Below are positions 1 to 10,504 of a stretch of DNA of 10,504 nucleotides, piece by piece. The stretch is from Zygophlyctis sp. KS116 (taxonomy: Eukaryota > Fungi > Chytridiomycota): assembly GCA_054661495.1 (NCBI GenBank), contig BAAFSQ010000322.1, positions 1 to 10,504 of the forward strand. The letters run 5' to 3'. The first letter of the stretch is position 1. Each line of letters starts with the position of its first letter. The position numbers were made by a program, and so were the translations under genes. Under the pieces are notes generated by a model, which was not told the origin of the DNA, did not search any database, and saw only the letters and a list, made by a program, of their open reading frames with translations.

Positions 1-484
1 CAGAGATTTTTTGATGGTCGATAACACCTTTGATTGAATGAAATTGCTGCATTGGACCCCAAATCTTTTGGCCCATTCTAGACATAATACCAAAACTCAT
101 TATCAATGTCAATGATCAAAAATCAGTAAATACTGTATTAAAAATCATTGTATTTTAAAGATTAAAAGATCTCGATTCAATCCTTTTAACGTTTTCTATA
201 ATTTTTTTAGATGCCGATTGGTTAATCACGGAAGGAAGACACACCAGTCCACAATCCTTCCACCAACGGGATAGCCGACACATGCTTCTCCTGACGTTTG
301 TGTAGGATAGACTTTTCTTTCGGTTATTTTCTAGTAGACTTACATTTTGGTCAAGGAAGGCAAGGAACGGACTTGCTCTAAAGGAAAGCTGACTGGTTGG
401 AGACCTTGGCCGATAAGAATGCAAAGTTTTAGATCGGGGTGCCAGCCTTATGGTCTTGATCGTTGATTCCTCAATTATTTATTT

Positions 485-826
485 TTACTCAGCTAATAAT
501 AATAAATTGTAAATTCACCATTAGTTAGTTCAAAGATTTGTTTGGTGATCTTATCTTGAAAATCTTGATCCCGAAAAAGATGCACATCCCGTTCTGGTAT
601 GGGATGTTCTAAATCCCCCCTTTTGAAAGCAAGCAACATAGATTGCACGATTATGGTACTGTCATATTCTGTTTTTTTGATTTTTAGGATTATATGTAAA
701 ACTGTTCATTCCAGCATTAGAGATTGCCCAATCAAACATCTGATTCTTTGATTGCCGAGCATTAAAATCATTCAGCTTTGCAACTTCGTCCTAAAATCAG
801 AGAGCGGTTTTATAAAAGATTGCCAT
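485..826 (-). other. Possible small or degenerate gene (~82 aa), unresolved
   Basis: Protein-like open segments DEVAKLNDFNARQSKNQMFDWAISNAGMN (790-703) and YDSTIIVQSMLLAFKRGDLEHPIPERDVHLFRDQDFQDKITKQIFELTN (668-519). They join only via atypical introns or a frameshift. No recognised motif. Confidence 0.2.
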
Positions 827-878
827 AATCTATCCGGTTAAATCAAGTTGCTACCTTTTATTGTTCAAAAAATCTAAA

Positions 879-922
879 GTGGACAACAAATGGACAATAA
901 GTAGACAACAGATGGACATCAT
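879..922. repeat. Imperfect 22-nt tandem duplication in intergenic DNA
   Basis: GTGGACAACAAATGGACAATAA (879-900) vs GTAGACAACAGATGGACATCAT (901-922), 17/22 identical, with internal ~11-nt periodicity of TRGACA. Confidence 0.6.
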
Positions 923-1121
923 AGAATACTAAAAGCTCAAGTTGGTTAAAAGATTCTTAATGCACCGACACATAATTTCAAAATTCAAAATCATTTAAAA
1001 CTTTCAATGATCACACAAAGGGACATGCGTGGTTGTGATTTTTCGCTATTATGGAACGTGCCGTGCCGCAAACTATATCTGCTAATTTTTTTAATATATA
1101 AGATTTAATTGAATTTCATTT

Positions 1122-2401
1122 TTAAATATTTCTATAAATTACTGAATCAACTGATATCCAGGTTTTGTTATCATCTTCTGGTTCATTACGTACCGTAAAG
1201 GAAATGTTAAATACATCAAAGTCCACTTCATAAACTTGGCACGATCCTGTTGGGGCTGATGAACCCACCAGCTGTGTAGCTACAAAAGAATTTCCGTCAA
1301 TTTTTGGTCCTTTTCCATGCCCCTGATGAACACCTCTTTAAAATCAGAAAAAGAACAACTGTACCTTATATCGAGTCCCAGAATTTGTGAAATTGCATCA
1401 ACCAAAACATCTGCTTCGTTTTCCTTGTAATATTCAGACTTTTTATTTTCCACCATATTCCTGAGACTTTCTTCAGCATCCTTCTTCCACTTGACAGCTA
1501 ACTTGTAAGGATTTTTTATACCATGCTCCACCCAATCAGGAACAAATGTTTTAAAGAAATCACATTGATTTGATCCTTTATACGTTCCATGATTTGTATG
1601 ATTTTGAATACCTGCATGACTAGAATCAATCGAGTGAACTATTTTATCCAAACAAGTTGGACAATCAAAAGGTCCCCAAGGTTTGAGATCAATTATAGGA
1701 GTACCATCTACAAGATCTGCTCCAGCCACAATTACAGTTCTACTTTCAGCACAGACACTGATAATTTGAACTAGCGACATTCCAATTGCATTTGGACGAT
1801 GAGGAGATCTTGTAGCAAAAAGCCCAATCGATCCTCCATTTAATAGAGGAGGCAATACTTTTGCTGCAAAAGATGCAACTTTTCCAGTGAAATTCCCAGA
1901 TTTTGCATTTGTTGTTCTATTTCTTAAAGCAGAATCCTTATTTGAAGATGCATTGCAACCAGAGAGAGATTTTAATAGATTTGTATTTTCATGAAAGAGA
2001 AAAATAACAAACATGTGTGAGTATCCTTCAAGTCCCAACAATGTTTCCGTTGGCATTTCCATTGATAAAACAATTTTAGATCTTGAATTATTAACTAAAA
2101 GCCCCTGTCTTGGAGTACCTCTTCTAGCTTTAAAAGGAGATTGCGCCTTTCCAATAATCACCAATGGATAACCTGAAAGAATGATCTTGTCCACAACTTG
2201 TTCCCTTATCATCTTTTCAGCCTTTATTCTTCCTGATCTTTCAGCGGCAATCTTTTGTTGACAATGTTGATGTAGATCTGATCCCTTGGAATCTGTCTTG
2301 TTTTCTGAATTTTGAATCTTTACAATCCAAGATTCAGATATTTTCCAACTCAAAAACAGACCCACCAATGTACCAGATATGAATGCTAAAGATTGATTCA
2401 T
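1122..2401 (-). CDS. TRMO: tRNA (m6t6A37) methyltransferase TrmO/TsaA family, with N-terminal hydrophobic segment; 2 exons, ~416 aa
   Basis: TsaA motifs SPFKARRGTPRQG, GLEGYSHMFVIFLFHEN, GLFATRSPHRPNAIGMS and GADLVDGTPIIDLKP. A 29-nt intron at 1336-1364 (GTACAG...TTTAAAG) restores LGLDIRGVHQG and extends the frame to TAA at 1124-1122. Spliced length 1251 nt. Confidence 0.9.
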
Positions 2402-2424
2402 TCAAAAAATTTCTTGTCTTAATG

Positions 2425-3373
2425 CTATATAATCTTGCCCAAACTTAATTCCCACAATTTTGCAGCCTTTTCTTGATCATAACTCTCTAGACTTGATTCA
2501 ATAACTTTTCCTTTTGAAAATACTTTCCCAGACTCTTCATTTAAACATGCTTGTACCATCCATTCTGCAGCCTGATCTAGAGATGTTGTAAAAGAGAATA
2601 AAGGAAGTATATAATACATTAAAACCCGTTTAATAAATGAGGAATTCCTAGATAATTGAGTAGTCGGCACAAAACCTGGACAAATTGCTAGAATTAGTAA
2701 AGTTTTAAAATACCATTTACTCGTATTCCCAACTTTTTCTTTTTAATCATACGATCTAGTTCAAAAGTAAACCAGATATTTGCAAGTTTTGAATTTTGGT
2801 AAGCTGTCCGAGAATCATAATTGTTTCGTGTCCATTTTAGATCATCAAAATCAAAGTTTGGTCTTCCTTTAGACTTAAATAAATTCAGATTACCCATTTT
2901 TCCATTTGTTTCTTGAGGATTATGCAATGAGGAAGAAACGACTAATATTTGACAGTTTTGACTTAGTTTCCCTGCATTCAAAAGACCAATGACTAAAGCA
3001 AAATGACCCAAATGATTGGTTGCAAGTGTTAATTCTAGTCCGGAATCAGACGCAAAGCAAAGTTGTGGTGGACCCCAAATTCCTGCATTACAAACCAGAA
3101 TATCAATCGGACCTGTCCATTTTAAGATGAATTCATTGATAGAATTTAGATTTGCTAGATCTAGAGAGTATGCGGTAGAGTTACTTCCTAAAGACTCTTG
3201 TGCAAAACGTCCGGCCGTTTGGTTTCGACAACCTATTTTTTAATTGTATATAATACATAGAGCTACTTGATACTCTTTTAACTCTATAAACTTTTGAGCA
3301 GTTGCAAAGCCAATGCCGCTGTTTGCTCCCTATGATTAATACCTTAAAATACAGTGATCAGAACGGTTTTCAT
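2425..3373 (-). CDS. Classical short-chain dehydrogenase/reductase (retinol dehydrogenase/WWOX/protochlorophyllide reductase-like); 5 exons, ~282 aa
   Basis: Spliced protein has MKTVLITGANSGIG (TGxxxGxG), ILVCNAGI, ATNHLGHF, VVSSSLH, catalytic YQNSK (YxxxK), CPGFVPTT and C-terminal AAKLWELS. Introns at 3330-3352 (23 nt), 3233-3256 (24), 2867-2893 (27) and 2688-2713 (26). Spliced length 849 nt. Confidence 0.9.
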
Positions 3374-3394
3374 TAAAAGTAATTTATTAAATTG

Positions 3395-4827
<1,433 letters not shown>

Positions 4828-5126
4828 TCAAATTTTCAAGAGTTTTTTCTTGTTTACTTGACCAATTGCTATTTTTTGTATTGAGATTTTATAGTATCTT
4901 ACGGATCAACTCAACTCAAGCTTACAATTTAATATTTATTTATTTATTTTACTAATTTTTTTTGGAATTTATTTTAGAATTTATAATTTATTAAAAAGGA
5001 AAAAAACTACTAAGATTAAATTAAATTAAATTAAAACTAACCTAGTGAAAAGTTTTAGAATTGTTTTAAGCACTCAAGTAGAAAGCACTCAAGTCAGGTT
5101 GAAAGTAGGGTGAGGAACAGGTTGAA
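4828..5126. promoter_or_regulatory. Divergent RIO2/NPL4 intergenic region, probable bidirectional promoter
   Basis: 299 nt between head-to-head start codons, with an extremely AT-rich core (poly-T/poly-A tracts, TTAAA repeats near 5016-5035) and a direct repeat AAGCACTCAAGT at 5068-5079 and 5083-5094. Function inferred from position only. Confidence 0.55.
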
Positions 5127-7007
5127 ATGCTCCTGCGAATTCGGTCGCCGACTGGACAATTTAAACTCAATTTACAAGAGTCTGCTACATTTACTAGTTT
5201 AATTTCTGAAATTTCTAAATTACTAAAGACTGAAAGAGAATTTAAATTGAATTTTGATTTCAAGGAAAATGAGATTTTAAGCTCGAAATTAAAGTATTTT
5301 ACATTTTATAATTTCTAGACATGGAGACTTGATTACAGTAGAATGGAAAAATTCTACATTAAATTCTATAGAAGCAGAGACTCTAAAGACTTTAAGTAGA
5401 ATTGATTGTGAATTAGATTCAGACAAGGGACTTATAGCTCAAGGATTTAATTCACAATTGTAATTTTTTACAAGATAACTAAAGGTGTCGTCATGGGCCG
5501 AGAGGTATGTGTGAATATTGTCTTCCTTTACAACCATATGATGCAAAATATTTAGAAGAGAAAAAGATCAAGTTTATGTCGTTTTATTCTTTTATAAAAA
5601 AGAATTTGGAAAATAATCAACTTGGAAAACCACTCTTAGAATCTGATTTTAAAGTTAAATTTCCTTGTCCTTCTGGGACGCATGCTCCATATCCATCTGG
5701 GATTTGTACAAAATGTCAACCAAGTTCAATTATACTAACTTCTCAGAGTTTTAGATGTGTAGATCATGTGGAATTTGAATCTCCAAAAATGATTGATTCT
5801 TTTTTAAGTGGTTGGAGAGATTCAGGAGTACAAAGGTTTGGTTATCTCTATGGAAAAGTAGAAAGGTATTTAGAGGTTCCTTTGGGGATAAAAGTGGTGG
5901 TTTCTGCTATTTATGAACCTATACAAGAAGGTTGGGGTGATGGGATTCAAGTGGATGTGGATGATGCAAGAGTACATAGAGTAGATTCTTTAGCGGATCA
6001 ATTAGGATTACAGCGTGTAAAAATTTATTAGTTGATTTTAGATTGGAATGATTTATACAGATTTAACAGATGATGGATCAGGTCAGGGACGTGTAATTTG
6101 TAAAAGGCATGTTGATTCATTCTTTTTGTCTTCTGCTGAATGTATATCTTCTGCTTCTATGCAATATAGCTATCCAACTCCTTGTAAGTACTCTGAATCT
6201 GGTTATTTTGGTTCTAGATTTGTGACTTGTGTATTGTCTGGTATATTTTATTTATTAAAGGATTTAGGGAATAAATCAAATGAAATTGATATTGAATCCT
6301 ATCAAATTTCAAATATTGGAGTTGCAATGGCTAGAGATGGGATTATTGAGGCTTCAGTAGATCCAACTTTGATGAGAGTTGTAGCTTCTACAAATACAAA
6401 GTATGTTCCAGAGGTGTTTTACAAGTATCGTAATGAATATGGTATTATGGTGCAAGAAGCAGCAAAGCCCACTTTCCCTGTAGAATATTTAATTGTGACT
6501 GTATGTATTTTTTAATTTAATATAAGATGACTCATGGTTTTCCTTCCGTTTCGAATCCAATATTCACAAAGTCTGAATTTCAAGTTGAAAACAGGCCTGG
6601 TAATCCTAGAATTGATATGATGTCAATGGTTAAGAAACATTTAGACTCTTCAGAGCTCATGGAAGCTCTGTCAGATTTTCATTTGCTAGTTTTCTTGCAT
6701 GATTCAAATTTAATTGACCAGGTATTGTAATTTTATTGATGGTTTTAGGAGGATATACGGTTAATTATTGAAATTGTCAAAACTCGTTCCAGTGATGTAT
6801 TATCAACACTAGTTTCGAGACCTTCATGGAAAAATTTCTTGGCGATACTTTCTGCTTCAACAGGTCCTAATTTAAGCTCATCTACTCCTAGTGGAACTAC
6901 CAGCTGGTCGTGCCGCCACTGCACATACGTTAATATGGGAGCTGATTGTGGTAAGATTCATATTTAGATTTAATAATTTAGAAATGTGTGGACTTCCAAA
7001 GGATTAG
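5127..7007 (+). CDS. NPL4: Nuclear protein localization protein 4 (Cdc48/p97-Ufd1 cofactor); 8 exons, ~564 aa
   Basis: N-terminal MLLRIRSPTG ubiquitin-like region; zf-NPL4 motifs CRHGPRGMCEYC and HAPYPSGICTKCQP; FRCVDHVEF, QRFGYLYG, AIYEP, GMIYTDL, FGSRFVT and PTFPVEYLIV; C-terminal NZF/RanBP2 finger WSCRHCTYVN...CEMCGLPKD*. Introns at 5294-5318, 5460-5484, 6017-6041 (25 nt each), 6241-6267 (27), 6501-6526 (26), 6722-6748 (27) and 6951-6981 (31). Spliced length 1695 nt. Confidence 0.96.
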
Positions 7008-7351
7008 ACGTAATTTGGAAACATAAATCGAAGATATCTATTGAAAGAATTTTACTGAGTTTTCTTAATATCCACAATATAATAAATAGCTTTAGTTGAT
7101 TACTTGCCATTCGGTAATATCTTCAAGTTCTTCATGATCTTAATCTCTCTGAAGATTCAGTTTGTCTCGTGAATGCGTAAATCAAGTCCGATAATTCCTG
7201 AAATCAGTCATCAAATCAGCTCAAGTGTTATAGTGGGAAAATGAATCGCTAAAAGCAATGAATTGAATTGTTTATAGGTTATTGGGGGAATCATAGAAGC
7301 CGAAGTAAATACCACAAACAATGCGAGTATTTGTTTACGTTTTGAAAATTA

Positions 7352-10300
7352 ATGAGCTCAAGTACAGTGAGGTAAGAATAAATTACAGATTAATTCAAGA
7401 CCAAAAACTCTTGTTCATAAGCCAAAGTCATCAAATTTCTATGATTCTTTAAAGGACCCAACACTGCATTCCTTTTTTCAAAAGCCAATGGTTCGATCAC
7501 ACTTGATGGAGAATGGATGGGTAATCTTTTATTATCTCATTCAAGTTTGCATCTAATGCAGAATGCTCTGTCTGCAAAAAGAAGAATAGAGGAGATATCC
7601 GATTGTGCGTTGGATGCAATACATTTACTCATGTGAATTGTATACCTCCATCTCCACTTAATGCAGCAAAGATCAAGGTCCTGATCATTTATTTCTTACC
7701 GATTGGAGCTGATATTACCTTTTTAATGAAACTGATCGCAGAATCTAGTCATTTTTCAGAGATAGAGGAATTGAATATAAGAACGACCAGACCAACATTA
7801 AATCATTTAAGGAAATTTGATTCTGTTTTGGTTTTTGGTCTTCCTGATGAAAAAAGAGAGGGTCATCGATGGAAGGAGCCTGACTATTTGGGTGATATTT
7901 TAGCCGCATATGTTCTTGGAACTGGAAATTCAAAGAAAGGTGGTGTTGTGCTGGGTCCAATGACTCATTCACTTGAATTAGGAGGGCGTTGGAGGAAACA
8001 GCGCTTATATCCATTACTGCCAGGCAGACCTATTAATTCTAAAAGTTGCAAAATGGGAAAGGTATTTTATTTAGTTTTATTCTAATCAAAGATTGAAATT
8101 GAAGGACATCCACTGTTGCAGGCATCAAGCTGTTTTAATGGAGGAGAATGTTCCTATCATGTTGCTGGTGCAGTAAATGAAAATGGTGCCAATACAGTTT
8201 TACGATGGGGCGACGGATTACCACTGGTAGTAGTTCTAGATGAGCATTCTGCTGTTGAACGTGGAAGGGTGGTTTCTCTTAACTTTCTTCCGGCGCCCAA
8301 AGTAACGGCACAGCAGCCTCTAGATTATTTTTGGGGTAATACACATCTACATTAATATTCAAGATCCATGCGGATCGGGAGATGCTCTTTTGGTCAATGC
8401 TTTGCGGTTTGCTGCGAGCCCAACATATGAAAAAGTAGGTGGGATGTTTAGCTGTGACAAGTGTGTAAGTTTTCCATTGTCCTCAACTTAGAAAAACTCT
8501 GAATTAGAAGAGCCAAACCAAATTCACCTTATCAAAAGAATATATAACTCAAATACTCCAAAAAAAGTACATATAGGAAAGCCTCATTGTAATTCTCAAG
8601 ATTTCGAAGAATTAAAGCAGATTTATAGAGAAAAATTTAGGGTACATTTTTTGATAGATAATAATTCAAGAAGCAAATCGACGACTCGATTAATAAGAAA
8701 TATAATGTCCTATCTACTTCCGAGCGCGAAAAAAAATCTGCTACATCGATCCAATCTGCTGCAATACAATCAAAGCAATCGTTGATCACTGTTAAGTCGT
8801 TTAAATCAGTTCAGGTATATCTTTTCAGTGTCTTAGTTTAGGAACAAAAGCATTCTAAAAAGTATGGGAGGTCTCAAATAAAGTCACCGACATCGGCTGA
8901 CAAATCTAATTCACAGAGCTCAAACAATCAGTCTGATGGAATATGTCCTACACCTTCCCAATGGACTCCTTATACTGCTGAATTTCCGGATGCTTGTTTG
9001 GATGACGAGTTTGCATACGATGGGCCTTTGAAAAACGAAGATGAGAGGAGAAGATCAGACTCAGAGCAAAATCGGGTCTCTTTTGCTGGAACTATAGAAA
9101 AATCAAACTCATCAAATGAAACTCTCGCTAAATCCTTGCAGAAAACTGCTGCCGAAAATTCCGAAAATATATCCACAAGTAGCAGCGGTGCCCCTAAAAA
9201 GATAAGAAGACCAAGCTCATCGAAACCAATCAGTGGTATTGGAAAAAATGTAAAAGTTATCGGTGCGCCTCAATACAAGCCGACAAAAAGATTAAATGAT
9301 CAACTTACTAATGAGCAGTCAGCTCAACGGCCAACTAAAATTATCCCCAAAAACACTCCAAATGAGGGATCTGTCTCAAAATCAAAGCCGGCTAAAGTGA
9401 CTCGTATTTCTACTGGCCAGATAGCAAGAAGGGAAAAGGAAAATCCTCAAAATGTTAAAAATGGTAATAGAAAATTAAAGAATGGCTTGAATGATTCAAA
9501 AAATGAAAGCATCATTGAAAAACTCACCGCCGCTTTAGTTGATGAAATGATTGATCAAGCTCAAGAAATGCAAATAACTGCCGAAATAAAACCAGACACT
9601 ATTTTATACGAATCAGAAGACTTCAAATCTTTGGCTTCTCAAGATTCAACTCTTCAAAAAGAAATTGACACAATGACGGAAGCTACAAATACATCTGATC
9701 AGATAGAAGATTTGACAGTGCATGTTAAAACTATCAGTCAGCCCAAAATAGCAGCAGAAAGCAGAGCAGATTTGAACGAACAAGAACAAGGAAAATCGAA
9801 TGAAGCAATCAACAATACAGAAACGGTGAAAAGATCAAGAAACGATTTGCCTAACTCCAAAGAACAAGAACTAAAAACAGTCGAAGCAATTAGCCAGCCT
9901 GAATCAGTAGCTGGATATAACGTGGATATGACTAAATCCAAAGAGGATTTGAATAAATCAACAGAAAAATTGAAATCAGCTGAAGATATTAGCTATAGTA
10001 AATCGGCAGCACAATCCAAATCAGTTCAAGCTATCAGTCAGCCCAAATCAGCAGCTGTATCTAAATGCGATTTAGCTCAATCCAAAGAACAATTGAAATC
10101 AGTTGAAGCTATCAGCAAGCCTATAACACCTGGATCTAGAGGAGATTTACAAAAATCAAGAGAACAATTGAAATCAGTTGATGCCATCAACAAGACTAAA
10201 TCAGTGGCTGGATCCAGAGGAGACTTGAGTAAATCTAAAGAACAATTGAAATCGGTTGATGCCGTCAACAAGAATAAATCAATGCCTGGATCCAGAGGAG

Positions 10301-10504
10301 TCTTGAGTAAATCTGAAGAACAATTAAACTCAGTTGAAGCTATCACTCGGCCCAAAGCCACTGGATCTAAAGGAGACTTGAGTAAATCAAAAGAGCAATT
10401 AAAGTCGGTTGATGCCGTCAACAAGACTAAATCAATGGCTGGATCCAGAGGAGTCTTGAGTAAATCTAAAGAACAATTGAAATCAGTTGAAGCTATCACT
10501 CAAC
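7352..10504 (+). CDS. Large uncharacterised multidomain protein (ERICH3/FSIP2-like motif, split PHD-like finger with inserted alpha/beta domain, disordered tail with tandem repeats); 3'-truncated by window, >980 aa
   Basis: Continuous frame from ATG 7352 using GTA..AG introns at 7372-7399 (28 nt), 7521-7545 (25), 8062-8091 (30), 8336-8363 (28), 8465-8506 (42), 8642-8670 (29) and 8815-8841 (27). The last exon is stop-free from 8842 to the window end. The alternative acceptor at 8490 (26-nt intron) leads to a stop at 8545-8547, so the junction at 8465-8547 is uncertain. Confidence 0.75.
9721..10504 (+). repeat. Coding tandem repeat, 75/78-nt units (25/26 aa, consensus SV[ED]AI...GSRGDLSKSKEQLK)
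   Basis: Well-conserved units start at 10021, 10099, 10174, 10252, 10330, 10405 and 10483 (spacings 78, 75, 78, 78, 75, 78). Degenerate copies occur from ~9721. The array runs off the window. Confidence 0.93.

Follow-up and report, generated by a model that had tools for sequence, protein, structure and literature searches.

A PHD-Type Zinc Finger That Appears to Enclose a GATase1-Like Domain in a Chytrid Protein Family

Introduction

Few chromatin readers are as small or as well studied as PHD fingers, which span 50–60 residues and are normally contiguous. This article concerns a gene of the chytrid fungus Zygophlyctis sp. KS116 in which the zinc ligands of a PHD-type finger appear to be parted by a complete alpha/beta domain that resembles class I glutamine amidotransferase-like (GATase1-like) and ThuA-like proteins. 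The gene lies on the plus strand of a stretch of 10,504 nucleotides (GenBank assembly GCA_054661495.1, contig BAAFSQ010000322.1, positions 1 to 10,504 of the forward strand), termed the window below. It is spliced, and the visible part of its protein is at least 986 residues long. An initial annotation, made from the window alone, had proposed the split finger, and its claims are considered here together with the follow-up evidence.

The closest described architecture is found in the CH2 region of p300/CBP, in which a discontinuous PHD is interrupted by a RING (Delvecchio et al. 2013, as related in passages of PMC10418647 and PMC12858617). As far as those passages describe it, the likeness is that PHD zinc ligands are parted by an entire folded domain, and it is an analogy of architecture only. 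In the same accounts, the p300/CBP insert is a small zinc-binding RING, whereas the chytrid insert is a metal-free alpha/beta GATase1-like domain of ~225 residues. They also place the p300/CBP finger in an animal acetyltransferase, between the bromodomain and the histone acetyltransferase (HAT) domain, while the chytrid module heads a low-complexity protein; searches of the window gene and its orthologs revealed neither a bromodomain nor a HAT domain. A domain nested in a PHD finger is therefore, on the evidence of these passages, not categorically new, although the initial annotation did not recognise the architecture as described. Literature phrase searching for split, interrupted or discontinuous PHD fingers returned nothing else relevant. 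What is new is the large, metal-free, bacterial-type alpha/beta insert, its size relative to the host finger, and its restriction to chytrids.

Canonical PHD fingers such as those of PHF21A/BHC80 (2puy, 2yql) and CHD4 (6ryr, 2l5u) share with the chytrid finger the spacing C-x2-C-x(8-12)-C-x2-C-x4-H-x2-C, the motif C[LI]xPP[LI], and the ending aromatic-x-C-x2-C. They differ in the loop between ligands 6 and 7, which is ~10-20 residues long in the canonical fingers of the same genome and 228-278 residues long in the split family. In addition, the split family has an invariant Phe at position -2 from the His, where the W-x-H fingers of the same genome have Trp.

The insert has the same fold as ThuA-/GATase1-like proteins (2gk3, 1t0b, 3rht, 4e5v) and the GIFT domain of IFT52 (5fms, 8bd7), with Z scores of 18.8-14.3 over 194-205 residues. 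However, sequence identity is 10-18%, the Pfam ThuA/GATase1_like thresholds are not reached, and the insert is without the catalytic Cys. Moreover, the insert is embedded in another domain, whereas the ThuA-/GATase1-like and GIFT domains are free-standing or terminal. The nearest relatives of the insert are bacterial tandem-domain proteins (26-31% identity, per-domain E about 1e-20), which carry signal peptides and Big_9/HYR/PKD domains and have no zinc finger. They also lack the eukaryote-specific W-x-E-P, RWRK..PLLPGR, DDHP and PTY motifs.

The Two Halves of the Finger

The window gene quite probably is a real spliced chytrid gene that encodes a PHD-type finger with a complete GATase1-like domain in the loop between ligands 6 and 7. 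The parts of this composite are arranged as follows.

7564-7641, plus strand: N-terminal part of the PHD finger with ligands 1-6, C-x2-C-x10-C-x2-C-x4-H-x2-C (Cys1 at 7564-7566, Cys6 at 7639-7641)
7642-7662, plus strand: stretch after ligand 6, IPPSPLN, the last part under the PHD profile match
7672-8420 (approximate), plus strand: inserted GATase1/ThuA-like alpha/beta domain, KVLIIY ... NALRFAA, with two introns inside
8421-8446, plus strand: linker SPTYEKVGGM from the last helix of the insert to ligand 7, its P-T-Y present in the eukaryotic family only
8447-8464, plus strand: C-terminal part of the PHD finger, F-S-C-D-K-C (aromatic-x-Cys7-x2-Cys8), where the translation ends ...GGMFSCDKC

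Translation reproduces exactly the six-ligand spacing that the initial annotation had read at 7564-7641, and exon counting agrees with its placement of F-S-C-D-K-C 251 codons past the sixth ligand (140 + 81 + 1 split codon + 29 = 251 residues). The ligands fall at about residues 54-79 and 331-334 of the protein. The canonical order of eight zinc ligands, C-C-C-C-H-C-C-C, is thus complete in the window, while the short ligand 6-7 loop typical of PHD fingers is replaced by 251 residues in the window and 228-278 in the orthologs.

The N-terminal cluster had been assigned to the PHD type, and profile and structure-database searches bear this out. Against the Pfam PHD family PF00628, the exon reaches 22.7 bits in hmmscan (E 9.8e-5), and the alignment covers positions 1-33 of the 47 in the profile. 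When the whole 12.7-Mb genome is scanned in six frames, this site obtains 25.3 bits (positions 1-34 of 47), the gathering cut-off being 24 bits; 11 other PHD loci in this genome match the profile end to end (1-47). A search of PDB sequences with the N-terminal 60 residues of an ortholog returned almost only PHD fingers at E 9e-6 to 3e-4, the best matches being CHD4 (8.9e-6), KMT2D (9.6e-5) and PHF21A (1.9e-4). The stretch after ligand 6 also fits the PHD-typical C[LI]-P-P-x-P-[LI] (compare CLDPPL in PHF21A), and its P67 is found in 13/13 orthologous sequences. A RING or RING-CH identity is ruled out, the C-x2-C-x4-H spacing being that of PHD.

The insert fills exactly the gap between PHD profile position 34 and the final CxxC. 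Eight database orthologs from which it was deleted were compared with a hidden Markov model (HMM) built locally from the 11 canonical PHD fingers of the same genome, and their alignments run through the whole finger (1-45). The initial annotation had looked to such an insert-deleted sequence for a PHD match, and for the orthologs the scores are mixed: the distal piece adds 3-6 bits over the N-terminal half alone in 4/8, while the other 4/8 show no gain. A word-based search with the N-terminal motif and the half-finger for an un-split ancestor found the query only, which is a weak negative because the search was limited by a length window and a word index.

These profile results also bear on a different explanation, in which the C4HC cluster is a degenerate remnant of a finger or a one-zinc knuckle and there is no intramolecular cross-brace around the insert. 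The distal CxxC would then serve another purpose: as a zinc knuckle of its own, as a redox pair, or, in a dimer, as a zinc site between the two chains. The borderline Pfam match, confined to profile positions 1-34, and the lack of score gain in half of the orthologs speak for such a relic. The conservation of the distal pair, described next, speaks against it.

Conservation of the Split Finger Across Chytrids

When the main exon was compared exhaustively (HMMER) with 1.84 billion cluster representatives, only ~25 clusters of homologs appeared at E <= 1e-3. The long annotated homologs come from Rhizophydiales (Gorgonomyces, Homolaphlyctis, Polyrhizophydium), Cladochytriales (Nowakowskiella, Cladochytrium) and Chytridiales (Entophlyctis), and all are hypothetical proteins. 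They have a common layout: the N-terminal motif, the six ligands, the insert, the sequence L-R-F-V-A-x-P-T-Y, 6-8 further residues, and C-x2-C.

All eight ligands, which the initial annotation had wanted checked in orthologs, are invariant in every homolog that covers them; for columns 1-8 of the alignment (A1) the counts are 9/9, 11/11, 12/12, 12/12, 12/12, 13/13, 13/13 and 13/13. Both columns of the distal CxxC are therefore kept in 13/13, and the objection that this pair might not be conserved, which the initial annotation had raised against its own reading, fails. The pair always lies 6-11 residues past the last helix of the insert, with an aromatic or aliphatic residue before Cys7. In the linker, P290, T291 and Y292 are found in 12-13/13 chytrid-type sequences and do not occur in the bacterial ones.

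Two environmental contigs extend this comparison. In the first, L030, which is syntenic with the window and whose protein is 73-90% identical to the window gene, the distal motif reads MFKCDQC. In the second and more distant relative, L031, the CxxC is kept in the form KDKCSTC and is displaced by three residues. This displacement suits a relic, as the register is then not rigid, but the invariance of the pair, its constant distance from the last helix and the PHD-like aromatic or hydrophobic residue before Cys7 all point the other way.

Some annotated homologs depart from the common layout and look mis-modelled. The Homolaphlyctis protein P0005 diverges past the middle of the insert and is without the distal CxxC, the Polyrhizophydium protein P0049 is without Cys1, and the Cladochytrium protein P0010 skips ~25 residues of the insert. 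Missed micro-introns are the likely cause.

Fold of the Insert

The insert was studied through an AlphaFold2 model of an ortholog segment (P0008, residues 58-372), made from an alignment of 58 rows that included the window exons as separate rows. The model has a mean predicted local distance difference test (pLDDT) score of 92.2 and a predicted template-modelling (pTM) score of 0.88, with ~92 in the first half of the finger; the distal CxxC segment scores 88-93 and is followed by a helix. The window insert is collinear with model residues 71-293, and an exhaustive structural comparison (VIA-align) of these residues gave the following matches.

2gk3 (STM3548): Z 18.8, 195 aligned residues
1t0b (ThuA-like): Z 18.5, 199 aligned residues
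3rht (GATase1-like): Z 17.4, 198 aligned residues
5fms (N-terminal GIFT domain of IFT52): Z 14.3, 195 aligned residues

The OST48-type oligosaccharyltransferase subunit follows with Z 11-12.5, and Foldseek (E 1e-7) and the ESM Atlas agree with a GATase1/ThuA-like fold. Because the large insert fills the match lists of Foldseek and VIA-align, no PHD structure is visible in them across the two parts of the finger. The initial annotation had described the intervening sequence as a complete globular domain of this kind; both points are confirmed, in that the model superposes on whole single-domain proteins at Z 18.8-17.4 and Foldseek concurs. Pfam gave no match on the insert exons of the window at E up to 1. 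In the ESM Atlas, a cluster of BTB-BACK proteins (500 aa) also matches the fold of the insert over model residues 51-294 (TM 0.64), and may represent another eukaryotic use of it.

Such a fold raises the question of whether the composite is a chromatin-targeted enzyme, in which the insert keeps a ThuA-like or other hydrolytic or amidotransferase activity and the PHD finger delivers it to a histone tail or other substrate. The class-I GATase/ThuA-like fold itself would suit this, as would six positions at which both the bacterial and the chytrid sequences are invariant (G141, G154, V156, G168, W170, H199) and which could line a pocket. However, no column of the insert reaches >=40% Cys in either the chytrid or the bacterial group, and the strand-turn has the sequence GGVV[LV]; the insert thus lacks the class-I GATase nucleophile. 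The Pfam ThuA and GATase1_like thresholds are not reached (the bacterial relatives score 16-18 bits against Pfam ThuA, whose cut-off is 33.4), IFT52 and OST48 use this fold as a scaffold without catalysis, and the bacterial kin stack 2-10 copies with Ig-like domains in the pattern of a binding module. An enzymatic role is accordingly considered quite unlikely. The patches specific to the eukaryotic insert are W-x-E-P, RWRK..PLLPGR and DDHP.

Relatives and Origin of the Insert

Outside the chytrid family, sequences related to the insert occur only in prokaryotic proteins that are 700-4300 residues long, in agreement with the bacterial kinship that the initial annotation had suspected. These proteins have a signal peptide followed by tandem copies of the domain, and contain Big_9, HYR and PKD-like domains as well; individual copies reach a per-domain E of 1e-21 against the insert. 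The limits of the bacterial copies agree with the two ends of the insert in chytrids. The proteins come from Vicinamibacterales, Sumerlaeota, Seongchinamella, Flavobacteriales and others, and one of them sits on a 1-Mb contig of prokaryotic style. The members of this secreted tandem GATase1-like family (P0031-P0047, P0016, P0018, P0055; L002-L009) appear, from their sequences, to form a separate domain family that is so far undescribed.

In a maximum-likelihood tree of the insert, a phylogeny that the initial annotation had called for, the chytrid-type copies, including P0017, all lie on one side of a branch with 100/100 support. The tree is unrooted. This one-sided arrangement is consistent with a single capture event, and it is probable that an ancestor of Chytridiomycetes acquired the insert a single time. 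A transfer from bacteria is a plausible inference.

Closure of the Finger Around the Insert

If the finger is complete, it would be a PHD-type C4HC3 two-zinc cross-brace, in which ligand pairs 1+3 and 2+4 each hold a zinc. Cys7 and Cys8 probably close the putative second zinc site with Cys3 and Cys4, a prediction that draws in part on the ortholog model. Because the insert has no conserved Cys, no alternative partner is available to Cys3 and Cys4. It is an established feature of flavodoxin-like folds that the beginning of the first strand and the end of the last helix lie on one side of the domain. The chain can thus return to the finger after the insert, where Cys7 and Cys8 would complete the site. 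In addition, the pTM of 0.88 and the pLDDT of 88-93 in the tail argue for one rigid body in the ortholog.

The same observations count against the relic. It would leave Cys3 and Cys4 partnerless, since the insert offers neither a further conserved Cys nor, close by, a His pair specific to eukaryotes, and the confidence scores of the tail and the whole chain would be unlikely for a free tail. A remnant finger with an unconnected CxxC is therefore judged unlikely. Ligand order, invariance in orthologs and the completeness of the insert fold all favor the original proposal of a domain inserted in the PHD loop between ligands 6 and 7.

Several points weigh against a closed finger around a captured domain and should be considered together. 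The model was made for an ortholog that is 44% identical to the main exon of the window, and not for the window protein. In 4/8 orthologs the distal piece adds nothing to the score of the small PHD HMM or slightly lowers it. The N-terminal half folded alone (P0008, residues 84-130) has a pLDDT of 55, which is uninformative because the run used no alignment. Finally, the tree that bears on the direction of any transfer is unrooted.

Gene Structure and Authenticity

The exons and introns of the window gene are listed below; the splice junctions rest on comparison between relatives.

7352-7371, plus strand: exon 1, 20 nt, with the ATG at 7352, MSSSTV + 2 nt
7372-7399, plus strand: intron 1, 28 nt, GTAAG...AAG, its ends kept and its interior diverged relative to L030
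7400-7520, plus strand: exon 2, with the conserved N-terminal motif ...FYDSLKDPTLHSFFQKPMVRSHLMENGW, 90% identical to L030 in amino acids
7521-7545, plus strand: intron 2, 25 nt
8062-8091, plus strand: intron 3, inside the insert, 30 nt, GTA...AG, with an in-frame TAA, at the same site in L030 and L031
8336-8363, plus strand: intron 4, inside the insert, 28 nt, phase 1, GTA...AG, present in L030 and not in L031
8465-8491, plus strand: intron 5, 27 nt
8492-8814, plus strand: exons 6-7 (8492-8641 and 8671-8814), with a 29-nt intron at 8642-8670 between them
8815-8841, plus strand: micro-intron between exons 6-7 and the last exon seen
8842-10504, plus strand: last exon seen, 554 codons without TAA or TAG, open to the window end, Ser/Lys-rich and of low complexity

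The ATGAGC and phase-2 donor of exon 1 are kept in L030, and only the ATG at 7352 gives the frame that leads into exon 2. The conservation of this ATG in L030 shows that the protein starts upstream of the region in the initial annotation. In the exon 2 motif, Y, L, DP, L, V, L and NGW are invariant across chytrid orthologs, and in the ortholog model it forms three short helices (H11-18, H20-28, H31-35). Positions 7546-8061 translate to FASNAECSVCKKKNRGDIRLCVGCNTFTHVNCIPPSPLNAAKIKVLIIY..., which includes FASNAE-C-SV-C-KKKNRGDIRL-C-VG-C-NTFT-H-VN-C, and 8092-8334 and 8366-8464 carry the translation on through ...GHPLLQ..., ...RWGDGLPLVVVLDEH..., and ...LLVNALRFAASPTYEKVGGMFSCDKC.

The two tiny introns reported within the insert are found at 30 nt and 28 nt, at the same positions in L030. 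The junction of intron 3 (...MGK/IEIEGHPLL) is collinear with P0008 (...LGKIEIAKHPLI), and that of intron 4 (FW/D/P) agrees with the FWD of the orthologs. More generally, the alignment of the window exons with annotated chytrid proteins is free of gaps at every junction, and introns at sites shared with L030 have conserved GTA...AG ends and diverged interiors. L031 (3760-3880) is without the introns that would match window 8336-8363 and the one after the distal CxxC.

Past the finger, the short motif LKxxYRxKFxxQI is kept in the family; in the window it appears in exons 6-7 as ELKQIYREKFR/KQIDDSINKKY, which recurs in orthologs, for example as LKGLYRQRFKDQIAWSVERKY in P0008. The tail contains tandem repeats of 78/153 nt (26/51 residues) at 9996-10501 on the plus strand, of the type GSRGDLSKSKEQLKSV[ED]A[IV].K. 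Long repeats of a similar S[RK]xDL..SK..L flavor are present in the Entophlyctis ortholog P0009, and the Cladochytriales orthologs have PWLDW-type repeats instead. Pfam gave no match on the N-terminal motif, the post-finger region or the tail, except for an IQ motif in the Gorgonomyces ortholog. No paralogs of the insert or of the N-terminal motif were found in the same genome. Such tiny introns might suggest a ciliate, but that origin is rejected, as the last exon has 554 codons free of TAA and TAG and every homolog is from a chytrid.

As the nearest non-chytrid relatives of the insert are bacterial, one might suspect an artefact, caused by an error in the gene model, a chimera in the assembly or contamination from bacteria. 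Yet the same order of parts is found in the independently assembled and annotated genomes of at least 6 chytrid species and in the two environmental contigs, and the spliceosomal introns within the insert stand at positions common to L030. Differences between the window and L030 number 46/27/169 at codon positions 1/2/3, of 326 each, and this third-position excess indicates purifying selection in exactly this frame. Moreover, the upstream neighbor, an Npl4 homolog at 5507-6967 on the plus strand that is split by micro-introns, precedes the finger gene in the window and in L030 alike. An artefact is hardly credible on these grounds, and contamination or chimeric assembly is excluded for practical purposes by sequence comparison; the introns, the neighbor and the selection likewise sustain the view that the insert is native to this genome.

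The counterpart of the Npl4 gene in L030 has zf-NPL4/NPL4 domains, and the C-terminus of the window Npl4 carries a RanBP2/NZF-like motif, WSCRHCTYVN. Between the Npl4 stop and the ATG at 7352 lie ~380 bp (6968-7351), which is long for a compact genome and holds only short open reading frames, such as one at 6970-7110 on the minus strand.

Possible Role of the Composite Module

PHF21A, CHD4, KDM5A and DPF3, which are among the nearest PDB relatives of the finger, are readers of the unmodified H3 tail. A tentative proposal, and a pure inference, is that the composite functions as a non-catalytic binding module. It would be a rigid unit that heads a long protein of low complexity with many repeats. 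A peptide, most likely a histone-H3-like tail, would be bound in the groove of the PHD surface, and the insert would supply another surface for docking, the part that GIFT/ThuA-like domains play in IFT52 and OST48. The remainder of the protein, with its short motif, the IQ motif of one ortholog and the Ser/Lys-rich repeats, could be scaffold-like.

A more far-reaching account is possible but doubtful: in a single event, an early chytrid may have taken a domain of bacterial origin into the third loop of one of its PHD fingers, and the two may so have given rise to a new, chytrid-specific composite reader. The zinc finger could then act as a metal-dependent clasp on the ends of the insert, and the insert might reshape or gate the peptide groove of the finger, as the p300 RING regulates its neighbor. 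The result would be a chytrid-specific module for chromatin or cytoskeletal recognition, without counterpart elsewhere.

Significance

In this family, the zinc ligands of a finger are naturally parted by a domain four times as large as the finger itself, and this arrangement is conserved. If the closure is true, the third loop of PHD fingers tolerates insertion of a whole domain. Such tolerance matters for domain annotation, since profile searches see only a truncated finger, and would be relevant to protein engineering as well. Closure would also make these proteins a clean example of a bacterial-type module nested in a eukaryotic zinc finger. The family is lineage-restricted and occurs in cultured Nowakowskiella, Cladochytrium and Gorgonomyces, and is therefore open to study.

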